Sequence record: MN047793.1
DNA length: 64,000 nt
Strand: one strand, 5' to 3'
The notes below the pieces were generated by a model. It was not told the DNA's origin and made no database searches. It saw nothing but the letters and a program-made list of their open reading frames with translations. Of this stretch, positions 11,143 through 61,314 are shown one piece after another (position 1 is the stretch's first letter; each line of letters starts with the position of its first letter). A program made the position numbers and the translations under genes.

Positions 11143-11361
11143 TCAACCAATAATTCTAGTCGTATGTGAGAAATACGTCAGATAAATGGTGTCAAAATAG
11201 TCTTCCACTTCCTGTTCAGTTTTCAACGCAACGATTTCAGCGTACTGTTTATGGGTAGATGGTATGGTGACCATATCACCCGACACCATGCCGATACGAA
11301 CAGACCCATCATCACAATGCATGGTGAAGTAATCAGCACCACTTACAATCATTTTCGACAT
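11143..11361 (-). CDS. Hypothetical protein
   Basis: 72-aa ORF, AGGA RBS. Confidence 0.65.
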   Translation of the reverse strand: MSKMIVSGADYFTMHCDDGSVRIGMVSGDMVTIPSTHKQYAEIVALKTEQEVEDYFDTIYLTYFSHTTRIIG

Positions 11362-11375
11362 AGTGTTATCCTGTA

Positions 11376-11618
11376 CTATCTGAGCGAGCCAATGCCATAC
11401 ATCTGAATGAAATTCGTCATCACGTCACGGTCATTCAGAATCTCATAATCCGTGAACGTATCGGCAAAACAGAACGTCAATTCCTTTTCACGATTCACAT
11501 GAATGGTGGAGGTGAATGCAACACGCTTAGACTCGGTTTCAGGTTCGTGAGTGATTTTGACCGTGTGCCAATGCATCAACTGAAACTTGCCGAGGTGGGT
11601 ATAGGTGTTGGTGCTCAT
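11376..11618 (-). CDS. Hypothetical protein
   Basis: 80-aa ORF ending in TAG. Confidence 0.65.
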   Translation of the reverse strand: MSTNTYTHLGKFQLMHWHTVKITHEPETESKRVAFTSTIHVNREKELTFCFADTFTDYEILNDRDVMTNFIQMYGIGSLR

Positions 11619-22608: not shown

Positions 22609-23631
22609 ATGCAAAAGTTTAGCTCTATTGAACAGTTCCGCCATGTCATCAAGACTGTGCGTGAGAACAGTGCCTATCACGGCCAGCCGATTCCGACCAT
22701 CGAATACGAAGGTACGGTGAAGCTGCATGGAACTAATGCTGGTGTCCGTGTGTATGAGGATAAGGTGCAGGCACAGAGCCGTGAAAACCTTATCAGCATT
22801 GAAAAGGACAATGCAGGCTTTGCCCATTATGTGGCGCGGAGTGAAATTGCATTCCATCACTTGGTTGCAAATATTGCATTGCACTTTGACCACGCAAGCC
22901 AACATCGTTACACCATCTTTGGTGAATGGTGTGGTGGCAATATTCAGAGCAAGGTTGGCCTGAATACGCTTGAAAAGCATCTTGTCATTTTCAATGTGTA
23001 TGACCACGAAATTCAGAGTTACCTGCCACGTACGTGGATGGATAGCCTGATGGAAAGTAATGCCGTTATGCAATCGCTTCACGACTATAACATCCATCTC
23101 ATCAAGGAAATTCCGACGTTTAATATCAGCATTGATTTTACGCAGCCGGAACAGTACATTGAAGAGTTGGAGCGTCTGACTTTGGAAGTGGAAGAGTCGT
23201 GCCCGTGGACCACGTATCGTGGTGGTACTGGTATCGGTGAAGGCATCGTGTGGGTTAAGAAAGATGCTCCCGGTGATAACCGTTATTGGTTCAAGACCAA
23301 AGGCGTGAAGCACCAGGGCAAGGGCGAAAGTAAGGTGAAGACCTTGAATGTGGACCCTGTGCGTACTGGTAAGATTCGTGATTTGGTGCTGGTACTCACT
23401 CCGGAATGGCGTTTGGAGCAAGGTGTAACCTATCTGCGTGAGAATGGTTATTCGCTTGACCAAAAGGCCACTGGTCAGTTCCTGCAATGGGTGATGAAGG
23501 ATGTTATTAAGGAAGAGTCTGACACCATTGCTGCGAATGAATTCACTTGGAAAGAATTGACCGGGTTGATGACTACTCGCATTCGTGACTGGTATTTTGC
23601 TCACCTTACTTCTGAAGCATTGAAGGCATAA
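22609..23631 (+). CDS. rnlB: RNA ligase, Rnl2 family
   Basis: Motif I KLHGTN, FGEWCG, EGIV, FKTK nucleotidyltransferase motifs; C-terminal helical domain. Confidence 0.85.
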   Translation: MQKFSSIEQFRHVIKTVRENSAYHGQPIPTIEYEGTVKLHGTNAGVRVYEDKVQAQSRENLISIEKDNAGFAHYVARSEIAFHHLVANIALHFDHASQHRYTIFGEWCGGNIQSKVGLNTLEKHLVIFNVYDHEIQSYLPRTWMDSLMESNAVMQSLHDYNIHLIKEIPTFNISIDFTQPEQYIEELERLTLEVEESCPWTTYRGGTGIGEGIVWVKKDAPGDNRYWFKTKGVKHQGKGESKVKTLNVDPVRTGKIRDLVLVLTPEWRLEQGVTYLRENGYSLDQKATGQFLQWVMKDVIKEESDTIAANEFTWKELTGLMTTRIRDWYFAHLTSEALKA

Positions 23632-36790: not shown

Positions 36791-36866
36791 GGCCTTGTAG
36801 CTCAGCGGTCAGAGCAGGAGCCTCTAAAACTCTAGGTCGTGGGTTCGATCCCCACCAAGGCCACCA
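36791..36866 (+). tRNA. tRNA with CTA anticodon (amber suppressor-type), Lys-like body
   Basis: GGCCTTG/CAAGGCC-A-CCA; arm GGAGC-CTCTAAA-ACTCT; T arm like the neighbouring Lys(TTT). Confidence 0.85.
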
Positions 36867-36884: not shown

Positions 36885-37508
36885 ATGCCTATAGGTAATA
36901 GCAAAGTAATGGTTACCAAGCATGTTATGGAACGGATTCAACAACGCTTCCCTAATTTGTTTGGAAAGTATTTCGGCAACGAAACCATGTTGCGAAATCT
37001 GATCATTGCTCAGGTTTCGACTGGTGAACGCTTAGAAGACTGGAAGCGGGTTCCATTTTATAAAAACAAAATGGATACCGAATATGGTCCAGGCACTGAG
37101 ATTGTTCGTAAGTCTGGTGTCTACTATCTGTGTCAGCTAACCGATAACAGTAAGTACCTTCGGGTGTTGACAGCAGTTCCAGGGACGCTCTATTACCCTA
37201 GAGCTGACTCCATTGCGGTCGGTACGAAGGGTGGAGCTAGATACTTCAATGTGAATGAGTACATTAACCGGTTGCATGGTGAGGCTCTAAAAGAGTATCG
37301 AATCCGTAGCAATGGGGTTAATCCCGCTCAGAAGCATGCTGGACACTCTTCATCGGCGGAATTTGCTCAAGTAAATGCACTAAAGCAGTCACTTAGACAA
37401 AATATCTACAACTCGCGGAAGAAAATGCTAAAGAATCCGCGTGATGTAGTAGGGCGATTGAAGCACGAAGAAAAATCGCCAAATTGCAAAAACAGCTTGA
37501 CGAATTAG
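36885..37508 (+). CDS. Hypothetical protein
   Basis: 207-aa ORF; N-terminal TKHVMERI.QRF resembles RelE-like folds (weak). Confidence 0.6.
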   Translation: MPIGNSKVMVTKHVMERIQQRFPNLFGKYFGNETMLRNLIIAQVSTGERLEDWKRVPFYKNKMDTEYGPGTEIVRKSGVYYLCQLTDNSKYLRVLTAVPGTLYYPRADSIAVGTKGGARYFNVNEYINRLHGEALKEYRIRSNGVNPAQKHAGHSSSAEFAQVNALKQSLRQNIYNSRKKMLKNPRDVVGRLKHEEKSPNCKNSLTN

Positions 37509-37666: not shown

Positions 37667-37978
37667 ATGAACGAAGTCCTCCAGAAAATGTTCCCCACCG
37701 GTGTCCTTAATGGACATGGTACCGAAGTGAATGGACTGAACGCTGGTGTGATTCCGCAAGGGGTCATCCTGAAACAGGCCCAGAGTAGTTTTGACAAATA
37801 TAACCGCAGGGAATGGTTTCTTGTGGAATCTGATGGATACACAGCATTACTGCGGGTATGCACTGCTAGTAAGGGTGCAGGTTATGATGAATTCGCGGTC
37901 ATTCGCGGTATTGTGCCTAGCAGTGATGCAACGCAAGTGGCTGAATTTCACAGGTTCTTTGAACAACAGACTAGCTAA
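37667..37978 (+). CDS. Hypothetical protein
   Basis: 103-aa ORF. Confidence 0.65.
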   Translation: MNEVLQKMFPTGVLNGHGTEVNGLNAGVIPQGVILKQAQSSFDKYNRREWFLVESDGYTALLRVCTASKGAGYDEFAVIRGIVPSSDATQVAEFHRFFEQQTS

Positions 37979-38081
37979 AAAGTAGTTGACAATTTGAAGA
38001 AACGTGGTAAAGTAGTTACATGAGGTGACGGCATCGAGGCCACTCACCAGTTCTTTTACAATTTGAGCGGTAATGAACGAA

Positions 38082-38296
38082 AGTTCATATATGGGAGCGG
38101 CTTCGGTAGGTTCGAATGCCAATCCATCGGATGTTGTCATGGTGAACGGCGTAAGCCCTATCCACTAGCTAGGAAAAAATGGCAGCAAGTTGAGATAACG
38201 CCACTAGCCCGGTATCTCTCTATTCACTATCAGGACTGTGTGCACGCTAATGTCCGGCGAATCCGAAAGCCAGAGGCCAATCCCATATATGATCTT
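38082..38296 (+). ncRNA. Multi-branched structured RNA cassette
   Basis: Perfect 12-bp closing helix TCATATATGGGA(38085-96)/TCCCATATATGA(38281-92); GNRA and T-loop-like hairpins inside. Confidence 0.65.
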
Positions 38297-38348: not shown

Positions 38349-38472
38349 CGGCAGGTAAGCAAGGGGCCAAAGCTGGGCGCTTAAGGTGTAGATACTTGAA
38401 AAGGTATCAGAGATGGTAGAGTCTCCCACAAGCACCTCTAATTCGTAGGTTCGAATCCTACCCTGACGACCA
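38349..38472 (+). ncRNA. 124-nt tRNA-like RNA with a two-hairpin insert in the anticodon arm
   Basis: CGGCAGG/CCTGACG-A-CCA; Tyr-like D arm; T arm GTAGG-TTCGAAT-CCTAC. Confidence 0.7.
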
Positions 38473-38479
38473 AGTTAGT

Positions 38480-38563
38480 ATACACATTTGCTAGAAGGTG
38501 AGCCTTCGAAGTAAGCTAAGTAAGAAATACCGGAGAAAGCCCGAGCTTACAGCAGATGTGTAT
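38480..38563 (+). ncRNA. Stem-closed structured RNA cassette
   Basis: 13-bp helix ATACACATTTGCT/AGCAGATGTGTAT with inner GAAGG/CCTTC and GTAAGCT/AGCTTAC stems. Confidence 0.55.
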
Positions 38564-38669
38564 CTAAAAACGTAGGAATACTGCCCAAAGCCGGTTCCTA
38601 TTGTCTGGAATGCGATAAAAAATTGCCGAGCTAGCGTTTCTAGCCCATGTCCAGACACCCTTTTTAAAT

Positions 38670-38819
38670 ATTTTGGTGGCGAAAGTGGTATACGCGGGGG
38701 CCAAGGCCAATATGATGTGGGGAGCTAAACATTCTCCATGCTGCTCATGGCCGAAAACTGCTGTCTTAGACGTTGCAGCTATACGTGACGACATGTGGGT
38801 TCGACTCCCACCCAAAATA
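38670..38819 (+). ncRNA. 150-nt tRNA-like RNA (Leu-type D arm, ~100-nt insert, no encoded CCA)
   Basis: ATTTTGG/CCAAAAT; TGGCGAAAGTGGTATACGC; GTGGG-TTCGACT-CCCAC. Confidence 0.65.
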
Positions 38820-38894
38820 CTATATAAGTTATACTGTGACTTTCTACGGTAGAGTACTTGGAAACAAGCTCCGAATGTAGACACAGTTGCAATA

Positions 38895-38998
38895 TCAAAA
38901 ATACTCACGTATTTGGCACAGGAAAACCAGACGGAGTAATCGGTCGCTTATTTTCTCGGGTGCGTCCCCAGGATTTAGAGTGGTTAGAGTATTTTTGA
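38895..38998 (+). ncRNA. Stem-closed structured RNA cassette
   Basis: Perfect 12-bp IR TCAAAAATACTC/GAGTATTTTTGA. Confidence 0.5.
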
Positions 38999-39002
38999 AC
39001 AA

Positions 39003-39083
39003 TATGACTGTAGAGGGATTCGTCCCTCAGATGTTGAAATGAAGGACAGGAACACGGGAGTTCGATTCTCCCCAGGTCCACCA
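39003..39083 (+). ncRNA. ssrA: tmRNA acceptor piece (3' part of a permuted ssrA; 5' boundary approximate)
   Basis: GGGAG-TTCGATT-CTCCC T arm, CAGGTCC-A-CCA; pairs with GGGCCTG at 39231 giving G3:U70. Confidence 0.85.
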
Positions 39084-39230
39084 AAAATATATTACCCTAC
39101 CCAAGGGGTTGTCAGCAGGGTTGGAAGGACTGACACATGCAAAAACTATTCAGCCGTTGTAATGGCGTGTTGTTGGGAAGGTTCAAAATCCCGGTATAAA
39201 TGAATAGCGAATCCGTAATGTATTTTTGAT

Positions 39231-39410
39231 GGGCCTGCACTGGTTTCGACTCTTGGAGATAATGGAGATTGACAGTTGGTCACACAAGACTTTAAAATGA
39301 AGACAGAGAAGTCTCTAATCACAAAGAATTAAACGACAACGTTGATTCATTCGATTTCGCCATGGCGGCCTAATCCCAAGCACATCTAGCACTTGGTCAC
39401 CCGACGCTAG
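39231..39410 (+). ncRNA. ssrA: tmRNA coding piece (5' acceptor strand plus tag ORF; 3' boundary approximate)
   Basis: GGGCCTGcaCTGGTTTCGAC start; tag reading frame ...NDNVDSFDFAMAA* at 39332-39373. Confidence 0.88.
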
Positions 39411-39542: not shown

Positions 39543-39686
39543 AGAGTGTATATTAAAGCCAAAGTTGCTATTAAATCTCGATAACTGGTTTAGGTCTTGC
39601 TCACCTTCCAGATAAACGAGAGCCTTGAGCGAGAAGGAATGAGGGGACGGCAGTCGCCCTCCAATGGAGGCTTTAATATACATTTT
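39543..39686 (+). ncRNA. Stem-closed RNA cassette
   Basis: 15-bp helix GTGTATATTAAAGCC(39546-60)/GGCTTTAATATACAT(39669-83). Confidence 0.55.
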
Positions 39687-39688
39687 AT

Positions 39689-39768
39689 GCGATAGTAGAT
39701 GTAAGCCAAGAATGGTAATGGTGGGGCTGTAGGGCTACGCATGCATGGTTCGAATCCATGCCATCGTC
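39689..39768 (+). pseudogene. Degenerate tRNA-like element
   Basis: GCGATAG/CCATCGT acceptor, CATGG-TTCGAAT-CCATG T arm, no clear anticodon arm or CCA. Confidence 0.4.
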
Positions 39769-47562: not shown

Positions 47563-47664
47563 AGTCCTGTTGCTAATGTTGGCCGTAGGGGCACCCTTAT
47601 ACAGTGCTAGAGCAATCTCCAGATAAGAGATGTAACGTGGGTTCGATTCCCACCGGGACTACCA
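47563..47664 (+). tRNA. Atypical tRNA-Ile(TAT)-like RNA with a 29-nt variable region
   Basis: AGTCCTG/CGGGACT-A-CCA; GCACC-CTTATAC-AGTGC; ATCTC/GAGAT extra hairpin. Confidence 0.65.
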
Positions 47665-48471: not shown

Positions 48472-48560
48472 GGCTAGGTGGCGGAGAAGTCGAACGCAGG
48501 GGACTGCAAATCCTCATGGAGAAATCCTCATCACAGGTGCAAATCCTGTTCTGGCCTCCA
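48472..48560 (+). tRNA. tRNA-Cys(GCA) with long variable arm
   Basis: Loop CTGCAAA, U73, 17-nt variable region. Confidence 0.85.
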
Positions 48561-48764: not shown

Positions 48765-48851
48765 GGGTCAGTCGCTCAGCGGCCGAGAGCACGAGACTGT
48801 TAATCTCGCGACGAAAGTCCATCGCTGGTTCGAATCCAGCCTGTCCCTCCA
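48765..48851 (+). tRNA. tRNA-Asn(GTT) with long variable arm
   Basis: Loop CTGTTAA; GAC-GAAA-GTC extra arm; U73. Confidence 0.82.
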
Positions 48852-59654: not shown

Positions 59655-60080
59655 TCATAAAACCATGTCCTCAGTCTTATACGAATATGCGCTTTCGTTA
59701 CCATCAAACTCTTCAAACGCGACCAAATATCCAGGCCGTCCCCACTGTACACACAATTCATGCGCAGACCAATAAGCATCCGGCCACTTAGTATTGGCGT
59801 AGTTAATGATTTCAATATAACGACGCTTCAATTCCGGGTGCTTAGCAGAATCCCAATTACGCTTTTCCGCATGTGCCAATACATCTTCATTGGCTTTAAT
59901 CCAATCCCATACGTTTAACACCATCCTAATCAAGGTGGGGTCTGTTCCGCAATCTGGATACGTATCACCATTTTGACTAAACCAGCCAACTCCATAGCCA
60001 GGGGATACAATGTATCCCACTTCACCCTTGTCATTATAATATCGATTAGTCTGCCGTGGAAGATTCATCAGTGATTCCAT
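59655..60080 (-). CDS. Conserved phage hypothetical protein
   Basis: SPGYG.GWFS..EFDGNES. Confidence 0.7.
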   Translation of the reverse strand: MESLMNLPRQTNRYYNDKGEVGYIVSPGYGVGWFSQNGDTYPDCGTDPTLIRMVLNVWDWIKANEDVLAHAEKRNWDSAKHPELKRRYIEIINYANTKWPDAYWSAHELCVQWGRPGYLVAFEEFDGNESAYSYKTEDMVL

Positions 60081-61215
60081 AAAGCTTATAGTTCTTAATC
60101 AAATGTTCCTTCAGGCCCATATCACGACCAATATACAGGTTCATCGCCAGAGAGAATACACCATCTGCCTTAAGCACTTCCTGTCCCTTGATTGCATAAT
60201 CCTTACGAGACAGCCCAGCATTTTCATTGTAGAATTCTTCCACCACACGATGCAGTCGGTTATACAGGGTCCGCCCCTTTTCTTCCATCTGTTCGATACG
60301 CAGAATTGCCAGCGGGTCCGCCACAAACAGCGCCTTGAGGTCATCCGACTGTTCCATGATGACAGACTCAAACAGACGACGCGGGTTGTTAATCTGGTCC
60401 TTTTGCAGATGCAGATTGGAATACCAGTTAGTCTTAAGCTTTACCTTGAGACCATTCTGGAAAGTGAACACATATCCTTCGATACCCGTCATCTCCCGCA
60501 CTTCCTCCACAAACGCTTCCATGTCGGCCGGCAGCGGATGTTCCTTACGCGTGAACCATTCCGGGAAGCCAGACGTTGCAAGGTCCACATATTCGCCAGT
60601 ACCATTGTGACGAATGTTCAGAACGCGAAGCGTCGGCTTGGAATATCCGATAACAATCTGGTTATCCGGAGCCATGTATTCCATGTTGACAGTGCAGCCA
60701 AGGTCCACATAGCCAGCAACCAACTTCTGAAATTCCCAATACTCTTCAGTCTCGATAAGAGCCTGTGCCGCAACTGCCTGAGCAGACGACAGAGAAGTCT
60801 TAGACTTCAGAATGAAACTGCGACCAGCATTGACAGCCTGACGCGGCAATGCCACCGTTGAGATAAGCGAACCGTCCAGCTTGTCTTCAATGGAAACCAC
60901 CTTGGTCCAATCAAGGTCCATGGTGAACGGGTTCTCACCCACATTGAAAAACTTCTGCATCGGCAGCGAAACCAGAATCGGCTCTACCTGTGCATAGCCA
61001 CCATTCTCAGAAACTGCCACGGTGTCCGTATCATTATACGGAAGCAGGAAGGTATGACCACGGCATTCCAATGCACCCGGCTTCAGGAATTCGGTGTAAG
61101 ACGCAAGACGATACGTGAACACGCGAAACGTCCGGCCATAGCGAACATGGTCCACAAAATAGAACGCATCAGTGTCTGCACACAAGGCCATCAGTTGGGA
61201 GTAAAGGTTACGCAT
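60046..61215 (-). CDS. rnlA: RNA ligase, T4 RnlA (Rnl1) family
   Basis: Y.LAS..F..GALECRG, MQKFFNVGE, KLDGSLIS, EGYV, KLKT.WY.H. Confidence 0.9.
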   Translation of the reverse strand: MRNLYSQLMALCADTDAFYFVDHVRYGRTFRVFTYRLASYTEFLKPGALECRGHTFLLPYNDTDTVAVSENGGYAQVEPILVSLPMQKFFNVGENPFTMDLDWTKVVSIEDKLDGSLISTVALPRQAVNAGRSFILKSKTSLSSAQAVAAQALIETEEYWEFQKLVAGYVDLGCTVNMEYMAPDNQIVIGYSKPTLRVLNIRHNGTGEYVDLATSGFPEWFTRKEHPLPADMEAFVEEVREMTGIEGYVFTFQNGLKVKLKTNWYSNLHLQKDQINNPRRLFESVIMEQSDDLKALFVADPLAILRIEQMEEKGRTLYNRLHRVVEEFYNENAGLSRKDYAIKGQEVLKADGVFSLAMNLYIGRDMGLKEHLIKNYKLYGITDESSTAD

Positions 61216-61314
61216 ATAAGTTCTTCCTGTCATTTGATGGATAAATTATAGAACAAAAAATGGGCCGTGTCAATAAGACACAGCCCATGAAGTACAACAA
61301 ATTGGGATTTTGTA

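Follow-up and report, generated by a model that had tools for sequence, protein, structure and literature searches.

A conserved tRNA-Leu-like element of Xanthomonas jumbo phages that probably encodes a non-decoding small RNA

In the genome of the Xanthomonas jumbo phage Xoo-sp13 (MN047793.1, 309 kb), an element of ~150 nucleotides (nt) at 38670–38819 on the plus strand joins the upper half of a leucine transfer RNA (tRNA) to a lower half of a different design. We propose, at a confidence of roughly 60%, that this element is the gene for a non-decoding, tRNA-Leu-derived small RNA of ~150 nt, judging from its conservation and its pattern of paired changes. It is probably a working small RNA rather than a broken or intron-bearing tRNA. 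All coordinates refer to the window, the 64,000-nt stretch of the Xoo-sp13 genome that was analysed, and position p of the element corresponds to window coordinate 38669+p. The 1.2 kb surrounding the element are 100% identical to MN047793.1, with coordinates unchanged. XacN1 (AP018399.1, 385 kb) is the only other phage record matching this 1.2-kb stretch; its ortholog lies at 37067–37214, in two identical copies, one in each terminal repeat.

The element retains the upper half of a tRNA: the acceptor stem and the T arm are kept, as is a D arm that includes the elbow nucleotides. The acceptor stem pairs ATTTTGG (positions 1–7, 38670–38676) with CCAAAAT (143–149, 38812–38818) over 7 base pairs (bp) and is followed by a discriminator A at 38819, after which the sequence continues with CTATAT and no CCA. 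Compared with XacN1, this stem carries two compensatory changes (4–146, U-A to C-G; 7–143, G-C to A-U). Its terminal pair and discriminator are A-U and A in Xoo-sp13 versus an A1.A72 mismatch and T in XacN1. The Leu-type D arm (38679–38695) has its stem at 10–12/24–26, unchanged in the XacN1 ortholog, and a loop containing G18G19. Within TGGCGAAAGTGGTATACGC, 16 of 19 bases are those of the D arm of the phage's own tRNA-Leu(TAA). The T arm, GTGGG-TTCGACT-CCCAC (126–130/138–142, 38795–38811), is identical in XacN1 and matches the tmRNA/tRNA T-arm consensus locally. The perfect T arm and 7-bp acceptor described in the initial annotation can thus be read directly from the sequence.

In place of an anticodon arm, the lower half now has an inserted, irregular hairpin of 48 nt, whose 7-nt loop is invariant, and after it the ancestral arm in a decayed state. 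It opens with a G-rich linker, GGGGGCCAA (27–35, 38696–38704), which resembles the former 5' strand of the anticodon stem; L164, a normal phage tRNA-Leu, has GCG-GGGGA at this place. No conserved partner was found for the G-run at 27–33, for which the candidate pairs with 89–96 are weak. A P2-like helix between this run and the 3' linker was rejected, as its GGTC/GACC pairing is present in XacN1 only. The extra arm itself, hairpin A (36–83, 38705–38752), is built from three stacked helices at 36–40/79–83 (GGCCA/TGGCC), 44–46/76–78 (TGA/TCA) and 49–55/63–69 (7 bp, including GGAG/CTCC), with an invariant internal loop TGCTGC (70–75) and a 7-nt apical loop. This apical loop, CTAAACA (38725–38731), is invariant together with its flanks, so that both phages share a 15-nt block, GGGAGCTAAACATTC, around it. 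Relative to XacN1, pair 50–68 has undergone a compensatory change from G-C to A-U, and pairs 37–82, 46–76 and 52–66 show one-sided changes that keep pairing. A K-turn in hairpin A was considered and rejected because no GA adjoins the C-stem.

Downstream of hairpin A, a third version of the sequence is available for comparison. A divergent phyllosphere-metagenome contig holds only the 3' part of the element, and its loose end supplies another version of positions 89–126. This relative also seems to hold the 3' 100 nt of the element as two tandem copies. Hairpin B (89–109, 38758–38778), which a cmsearch alignment with the T4 tRNA-Leu identifies as the putative decayed anticodon arm of the ancestral tRNA-Leu, has a stem at 89–92/106–109 (CTGC/GCAG) that can be extended to 7 pairs and whose outer pairs are invariant. 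Its loop reads CTTAGAC in Xoo-sp13, GAAAGC (6 nt) in XacN1 and CACTAC in the metagenome relative; pair 93–105 is U.U in Xoo-sp13 and U-A in that relative. An alternative hairpin, C (101–105/113–117, 38770–38786), has a 7-nt loop, GCAGCTA, that follows the pattern GCAGCNN. Across the three sequences its pairs are A-U, G-C and A-U at 101–117, U.U, U-A and A-U at 105–113, and U-A, U-A and U.G at 104–114. The decayed anticodon arm may refold into this second 5-bp hairpin or knot with it: the outer pairs of hairpin B are compatible with the whole of hairpin C, together making an H-type pseudoknot. The GCAGC of the hairpin C loop is also complementary to GCUGC at 71–75, in the internal loop of hairpin A, and to CUGC at 89–92. 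A variable linker (118–125, 38787–38794) leads to the T arm. It measures 8 nt here, 7 nt in XacN1 and ~2 nt in the metagenome relative, and varies in sequence too.

This anatomy confirms the observation at 38670–38819 as real and lends partial support to the way in which it was first interpreted. The four nested helices initially reported are all present, with ATGA/TCAT as TGA/TCA at 44–46/76–78. To these must be added the covarying hairpin at 101–105/113–117, which competes or knots with CTGC/GCAG. Likewise, ~100 nt of helices do separate the D and T arms, but they are not a single insert. They comprise an arm of ~60 nt at the 26/27 hinge and the remains of the anticodon arm.

Judged from its sequence, the body of the element descends from tRNA-Leu. 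When a covariance model of the element was searched, the phages' tRNA-Leu genes were its best non-self matches (30–40 bits; the best at 37–40 bits, E ~1e-6), which upholds the Leu-type shell proposed initially on the basis of the D arm. The T4 tRNA-Leu scored 36.5 bits and tRNA-Leu genes in IMG/VR contigs 40–51 bits. In the T4 alignment, positions 89–109 fall on the anticodon arm and 110–125 on the variable arm. The hairpin B loop of Xoo-sp13 still resembles a Leu(UAG) anticodon loop and sits on a stem with two pairs too many. In the simplest history that these sequences suggest, a tRNA-Leu gene would have gained an arm of ~60 nt directly after nucleotide 26, decoding would have been lost thereafter, and selection would then have taken hold on the new lower half.

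The predicted RNA cannot decode. A 7-bp acceptor, a D arm with GG and a T arm with a TTCRANY loop are all present; an anticodon arm with a 5-bp stem and a 7-nt loop containing U33 directly after nucleotide 26 is absent. The loop of the ancestral anticodon arm measures 7, 6 and 6 nt in the three versions, with unrelated sequences. All 26 tRNAs that ARAGORN finds in the window encode CCA, whereas the element has CTATAT in its place. ARAGORN in default mode does not call the element, and the Rfam tRNA model (RF00005) gives no match at E≤1, nor at E≤10 on a short stretch. No Rfam family matches the element, and at relaxed thresholds on a short stretch around it the T arm alone was matched. Standard tRNA finders overlook or mislabel the element, and it is unannotated in both GenBank records: the Xoo-sp13 record has no feature between 37978 and 39879, and the XacN1 record has nothing between ORF088 and tRNA-Gly, where the ortholog sits. 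The 'pseudogene' of the XacN1 paper (PMC5852040) was rejected as this ortholog; its anticodon is TTC, and it is therefore a separate locus.

The main evidence for function is conservation. The element is 81% identical to its XacN1 ortholog over 152 aligned columns, with 79% identity in the lower half (27–125) and 85% in the shell. Bona fide tRNAs of the two phages, compared as 23 matchable pairs with like anticodon, have a median identity of 77% (range 60–91%). The possibility raised at the outset that the insert might prove unconserved therefore falls away, and by sequence the element matches the phage's real tRNAs in conservation. The element lies in a 2.4-kb promoter-driven island of non-coding RNAs (ncRNAs), and a sensitive comparison of the two phages' islands recovered five blocks. 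The element ranked top by far (162 nt, E ~1e-37; the block extends to 38827), ahead of the promoter region and pieces of a transfer-messenger RNA (tmRNA) gene, and most of the island is unalignable. Identity between the rIIA proteins of Xoo-sp13 and XacN1 is only 41%. Taken as sequence evidence, this pattern shows purifying selection along the entire length of the element.

Paired changes point in the same direction. The two-sequence alignment contains 39 pairs, including hairpin C and the outer pairs of hairpin B, and 96% of the cells are paired, compared with 36–47% in controls with slid partners. Four double-sided compensatory changes are distributed across the acceptor, hairpin A and hairpin C. 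The covariance analysis suggested in the initial annotation thus favours the proposed fold, albeit from two full sequences. A metagenome variant differs from the element at three sites, two of them in the D loop; the third, A40G, turns an A-U pair into G.U and retains pairing.

The wider search for relatives yielded a narrow distribution. Pattern scans with four conserved motifs across IMG/VR, GTDB genomes and JGI metagenomes returned no further orthologs: once screened for flanking motifs or with the covariance model, all matches proved to be chance matches or ordinary tRNA-Leu genes and were rejected. Nor is the element present in RAS14 and CM1, related jumbo phages of Stenotrophomonas. Public runs with close relatives of the stretch, phyllosphere and wastewater samples among them, all consist of DNA contigs; one labelled RNA-Seq is probably DNA, and the element lies outside its coverage.

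The element lies on the same strand as the other tRNA-like RNAs of the island. At the island's head is a sigma-70-type promoter, TTGACA-16-TAAAGT (37986–38013, plus strand; 10/12 matches in a promoter scan, extended TG), which falls in a block conserved with XacN1 (37969–38111) and is probably the source of the element's transcript. From this promoter the element would be co-transcribed with the neighbouring structured RNAs. RNase P would cut its 5' end, and the 3' end would be trimmed as for a pre-tRNA lacking CCA. CCA could be added by a host enzyme or by a phage one, such as that annotated in XacN1, and the processed RNA would accumulate as a stable species. The tRNA shell would serve as the handle by which the RNA is processed, stabilised and recognised, leaving the conserved lower half as the working part. 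By context and analogy, the likeliest mode of action would be mimicry of a tRNA, with the RNA binding or distracting a factor that recognises tRNAs.

Several points weigh against this proposal. The decoy or scaffold mechanism is founded on context and analogy, and transcription, RNA ends, CCA addition and stability are all predictions from the sequence. The folding energy of the element is no better than that of shuffled sequences (z = –0.55), and 27 of 500 shuffles reach the observed score in a shuffle control; the support for the structure is therefore conservation and covariation, not thermodynamics. Covariation is itself thin, coming from two full orthologs, one near-identical variant and one partial divergent variant, and since only two of the sequences are full it is suggestive and not proof. 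The differences in discriminator (A versus T) and 1–72 pair (A-U versus A.A) between the phages argue against a single conserved aminoacylation identity. Finally, part of the 3' conservation might serve the promoter of the tmRNA gene downstream.

This last point underlies an alternative that we consider unlikely but that survives better than the others, namely that the element works mainly in cis as part of the tmRNA gene, serving as a tRNA-shaped processing signal and/or a promoter in its 3' part. In both phages the element sits directly upstream of a two-piece (permuted) tmRNA gene, which is unannotated in both. In Xoo-sp13 this gene lies at 39030–39373 (plus strand; Rfam RF04321, 65.7 bits), and in XacN1 (L002:3166–3531; RF04321, 123 bits) it starts only 16 nt past the ortholog. 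No SmpB is encoded in either phage genome. The conserved ACTATATAAG immediately downstream of the element (38819–38828, plus strand) is a candidate –10 box for the tmRNA gene, with which the T-loop TCGACT could possibly act as a –35-like box at a suitable distance. The Rfam beta_tmRNA model aligns the post-discriminator motif of XacN1 with the TATAAT of its leader; this alignment of ACTATATAA with the leader –10 means that part of the 3' conservation may serve tmRNA expression. However, a plain tRNA or hairpin would suffice for such a role, which leaves unexplained why the 100-nt lower half has invariant loops and helices that covary. In addition, ~200 nt separate the element from the tmRNA in Xoo-sp13, in a spacer with large indels among close relatives, and the promoter scan listed no plus-strand site just after the element. 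Spacers at 38473–38568, 38887–38999 and 39084–39245 are missing or replaced in close metagenome relatives. Pairing between the element and the tmRNA was also considered and rejected: RNAduplex gave meaningless full-length duplexes, and a short complementarity to the tag end is unconserved.

A slightly weaker candidate is a tRNA gene with an unconventional intron or removable arm, whose excision by a nuclease and ligation by phage RNA-repair ligases would yield a decoding tRNA. Splicing is retained as a minor alternative, given that the phages encode RNA ligases of the Rnl1/Rnl2 type, with PNKP in XacN1 (PMC5852040; PMC7824862). In a deletion scan, every segment of at least 30 nt within 27–125 was removed from both orthologs and the products were run through ARAGORN. 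Most products differ between Xoo-sp13 and XacN1. Deleting 28–100 creates a 76–78-nt cloverleaf in both phages, called as 'Ala(agc)', with hairpin C as a covarying anticodon arm (5-bp stem, 7-nt loop). However, in this shared product positions 32 and 33 are G and C, where U33 is near-universal; it also has U37 in Xoo-sp13, a 7–8-nt variable loop and no Ala identity pair (3–70 is U-A). Deleting 27–88 produces a tRNA-Leu(tag)-like molecule in Xoo-sp13 only; this solution is missing in XacN1, whose loop has 6 nt. Intron-aware ARAGORN is equally discordant, returning a poor Ser(gct) with a 58-nt intron in Xoo-sp13 versus Cys(aca) with a 73-nt intron in XacN1. With isotypes and intron positions differing between the orthologs and the anticodon-like loop at 89–109 unconserved, the spliced product implied in the initial annotation is unsupported. 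Moreover, the 'intron' is conserved to the same degree as the 'exons', and the bulges of hairpin A are placed opposite to a bulge-helix-bulge arrangement. Group I introns, group II introns and ribozymes gave no match in Rfam up to E≤10. The extra material was rightly judged too short for a group I intron, at 61–100 nt versus roughly 200 nt or more, and Intron_gpI has no match at that threshold. We also know of no splicing endonuclease in such a setting.

It is improbable that the element is a decaying, non-functional tRNA-Leu pseudogene, similar in both phages by common descent alone. The lack of an anticodon arm and of CCA, the weak or mismatched 1–72 pair and the confinement of the element to a narrow phage lineage would all fit decay. 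Against this, the element remains 81% identical although the flanks and most of the island are unalignable and rIIA is 41% identical, and the differences within the element preserve pairs, including the four compensatory changes.

We give still less weight to a self-masked, switchable tRNA, in which hairpin C would be a genuine anticodon-type arm, with AGC in its 7-nt loop. The loop GCAGC would be held by tandem GCU-GCU 'codons' at 71–75 or by CUGC at 89–92, until a rearrangement, or excision of a 73-nt arm at the 26/27 hinge, frees hairpin C. The excision route would place an intron at a non-canonical site that is new to bacteria and phages, and could possibly use the phage repair ligases. 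Such a molecule would be a Leu-bodied tRNA reading or sensing GCU, or a leucylated carrier outside the ribosome.

A small protein is very improbable: a 59-codon open reading frame (ORF) is listed at 38673–38852 and the first ~20 codons from the ATG at 38712 are similar in XacN1, but only 2 of 9 substitutions fall at third codon positions in the best frame (counted on the ortholog alignment), indels shift the frame downstream so that conserved nucleotides 102–110 lie in different frames in the two phages, and the ORF crosses the T arm and acceptor strand. Two known classes were rejected as identities. A mini-tmRNA is contradicted by a U-A pair at 3–70 in both phages in place of G3.U70 and by the lack of a tag frame with a conserved stop. 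A Y RNA is contradicted by the absence of a TROVE/Ro protein (PF05731) from both phage genomes and by the acceptor stem in which the element ends.

Besides the element and the two-piece tmRNA, the island holds a 215-nt structured RNA, a Tyr-type shell and a 190-nt tRNA-like RNA. The Tyr-type RNA (38349–38472, plus strand) is 124 nt long, with a Tyr-type D arm and a T arm identical to that of the tRNA-Tyr of the phage; its CCA is encoded, and an insert of ~50 nt lies inside it. It scores only 24.8 bits with the Rfam tRNA model, and its XacN1 counterpart (L002:2790–2915) is far more diverged than that of the element. Good T arms on oversized bodies are also found in the 190-nt RNA (39579–39768, plus strand) and in a 99-nt RNA (47563–47661, plus strand), the latter with 35 bits in the Rfam tRNA model and no ARAGORN call. 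In XacN1, a 75-nt mini tRNA-like unit (L002:2916–2990) lies directly upstream of the ortholog, with a stem GCACAG/CTGTGC and a T arm GGTGG-TTCGATA-CCAC; it has no counterpart in Xoo-sp13. The 103-residue ORF upstream of the island promoter (37667–37978) has no relatives but itself in a collection of 5.8 billion proteins. GOLLD RNA (RF02032) is present, unannotated, in the tRNA/ncRNA islands of XacN1 (38570–38983, L002:4505–4918, repeated at 357365–357778) and RAS14 (301163–301588, minus strand), with scores of 227 and 218 bits; Xoo-sp13 is without it.

The phage is heavily invested in tRNA supply and tRNA repair. A 395-residue protein (60046–61233, minus strand) adjoining rIIB/rIIA combines T4 Rnl1 ligase and Rnl1 C-terminal (tRNA-binding) domains; its position beside rIIB/rIIA suggests that host nucleases which cleave tRNA exert pressure. 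The repertoire of XacN1 includes PNKP/Hen1, a CCA-adding enzyme and further ligases (PMC5852040, PMC7824862), as well as a peptidyl-tRNA hydrolase (PMC5852040). Several of the tRNAs have features unusual for their isotypes. The tRNA-Cys (48472–48560, 89 nt) and tRNA-Asn (48765–48851, 87 nt) of Xoo-sp13 have long class II-like extra arms, and XacN1 has oversized tRNAs for Gly (86 nt), Thr (91 nt) and Lys (89 nt). An amber-suppressor-type tRNA with anticodon CTA lies at 36791–36866 (plus strand), and XacN1 has two in tandem, for which its authors found no target genes (PMC5852040).

Small RNAs with tRNA shells seem to be a recurrent phage invention, since other phage contigs in IMG/VR hold Leu-type shells with foreign lower halves. 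Contigs L160, L162 and L163 carry a 119-nt RNA of this type and L158 one of 138 nt. These were rejected as orthologs: what they have in common with the element is the Leu-type shell, perhaps also the hairpin A base, and the remainder is unalignable. We count them as analogues or very distant relatives from their sequences. The segment 11290–11585 of L163 (141 kb), seen also in L160 and L162, comprises a TTGACA/TTAATAT promoter followed by the 119-nt Leu-shelled RNA (11357–11475), which is without an anticodon arm, and then by a 103-nt tRNA-like RNA (Rfam tRNA-Sec, 36.5 bits, below cut-off). This contig has a protein in common with the window ORF at 22609–23631.

Comparing the element with the class II tRNA-Leu of phages and proteobacteria reveals the same acceptor/D/T architecture, a matching D-arm sequence and matching first bases of the anticodon stem (GCG-GGGG). 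The element differs in its ~60-nt extra arm after nucleotide 26, its unconserved anticodon loop, the lack of a regular long variable arm and of an encoded CCA, the A at position 1 and the unconserved discriminator. With tmRNA it shares a locus, a tRNA-like upper half ending in an acceptor stem, and a larger structured lower domain with a possible pseudoknot. However, it lacks G3.U70 and a tag frame conserved between the phages, reaches only a 12-bit local T-arm match in Rfam, and has a true D stem. The bacterial Y RNA YrlA is likewise non-coding, mimics the tRNA elbow and occurs in RNA-repair contexts, but Y RNAs end in a Ro-binding stem where the element ends in an acceptor stem.

The nearest analogue is T4 RNA C (species 1 RNA, rnaC), an abundant late RNA; according to reviews and a recent omics study, the roles of RNA C and RNA D are unknown (PMC3014915, PMC9697503). 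At 139 nt versus 150 nt, both RNAs lie in a phage tRNA cluster on the tRNA strand, lack an encoded CCA, and surround a two-hairpin body of ~100 nt with an acceptor-like stem of seven positions and a canonical T arm, which in rnaC is a perfect CCGGG-TTCGAAT-CCCGG. The predicted fold of rnaC (z = –4.6) places two hairpins, one of them long and irregular, between the acceptor-like stem and the T arm. A D arm cannot be recognised in RNA C, and two U.U mismatches interrupt its acceptor stem; the element has kept a Leu-type D arm and the remains of an anticodon arm. No sequence homology was detected between the two, with the element's model scoring 10.4 bits on a portion of rnaC (L258:2910–3001), below ordinary tRNAs.

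Stable non-tRNA RNAs such as T4 RNA C and D have been known from phage tRNA clusters for fifty years. The element offers a cleaner case, with a readable descent from tRNA-Leu and a conserved, structured lower half. Its setting is a promoter-driven island with a two-piece tmRNA, in a lineage that has a complete set of tRNAs and several enzymes for tRNA repair. If it does mimic tRNA against a host or phage factor, this would be the first function for such RNAs. In engineered 'tRNA scaffold' RNAs, a cargo RNA takes the place of the anticodon arm and yields stable, RNase P-processed transcripts in E. coli. The element shares this plan of a retained tRNA shell with a lower part swapped for another structured RNA but differs in being natural, with a conserved cargo. 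As a tRNA mimic, it would give these engineered RNAs a counterpart in nature.

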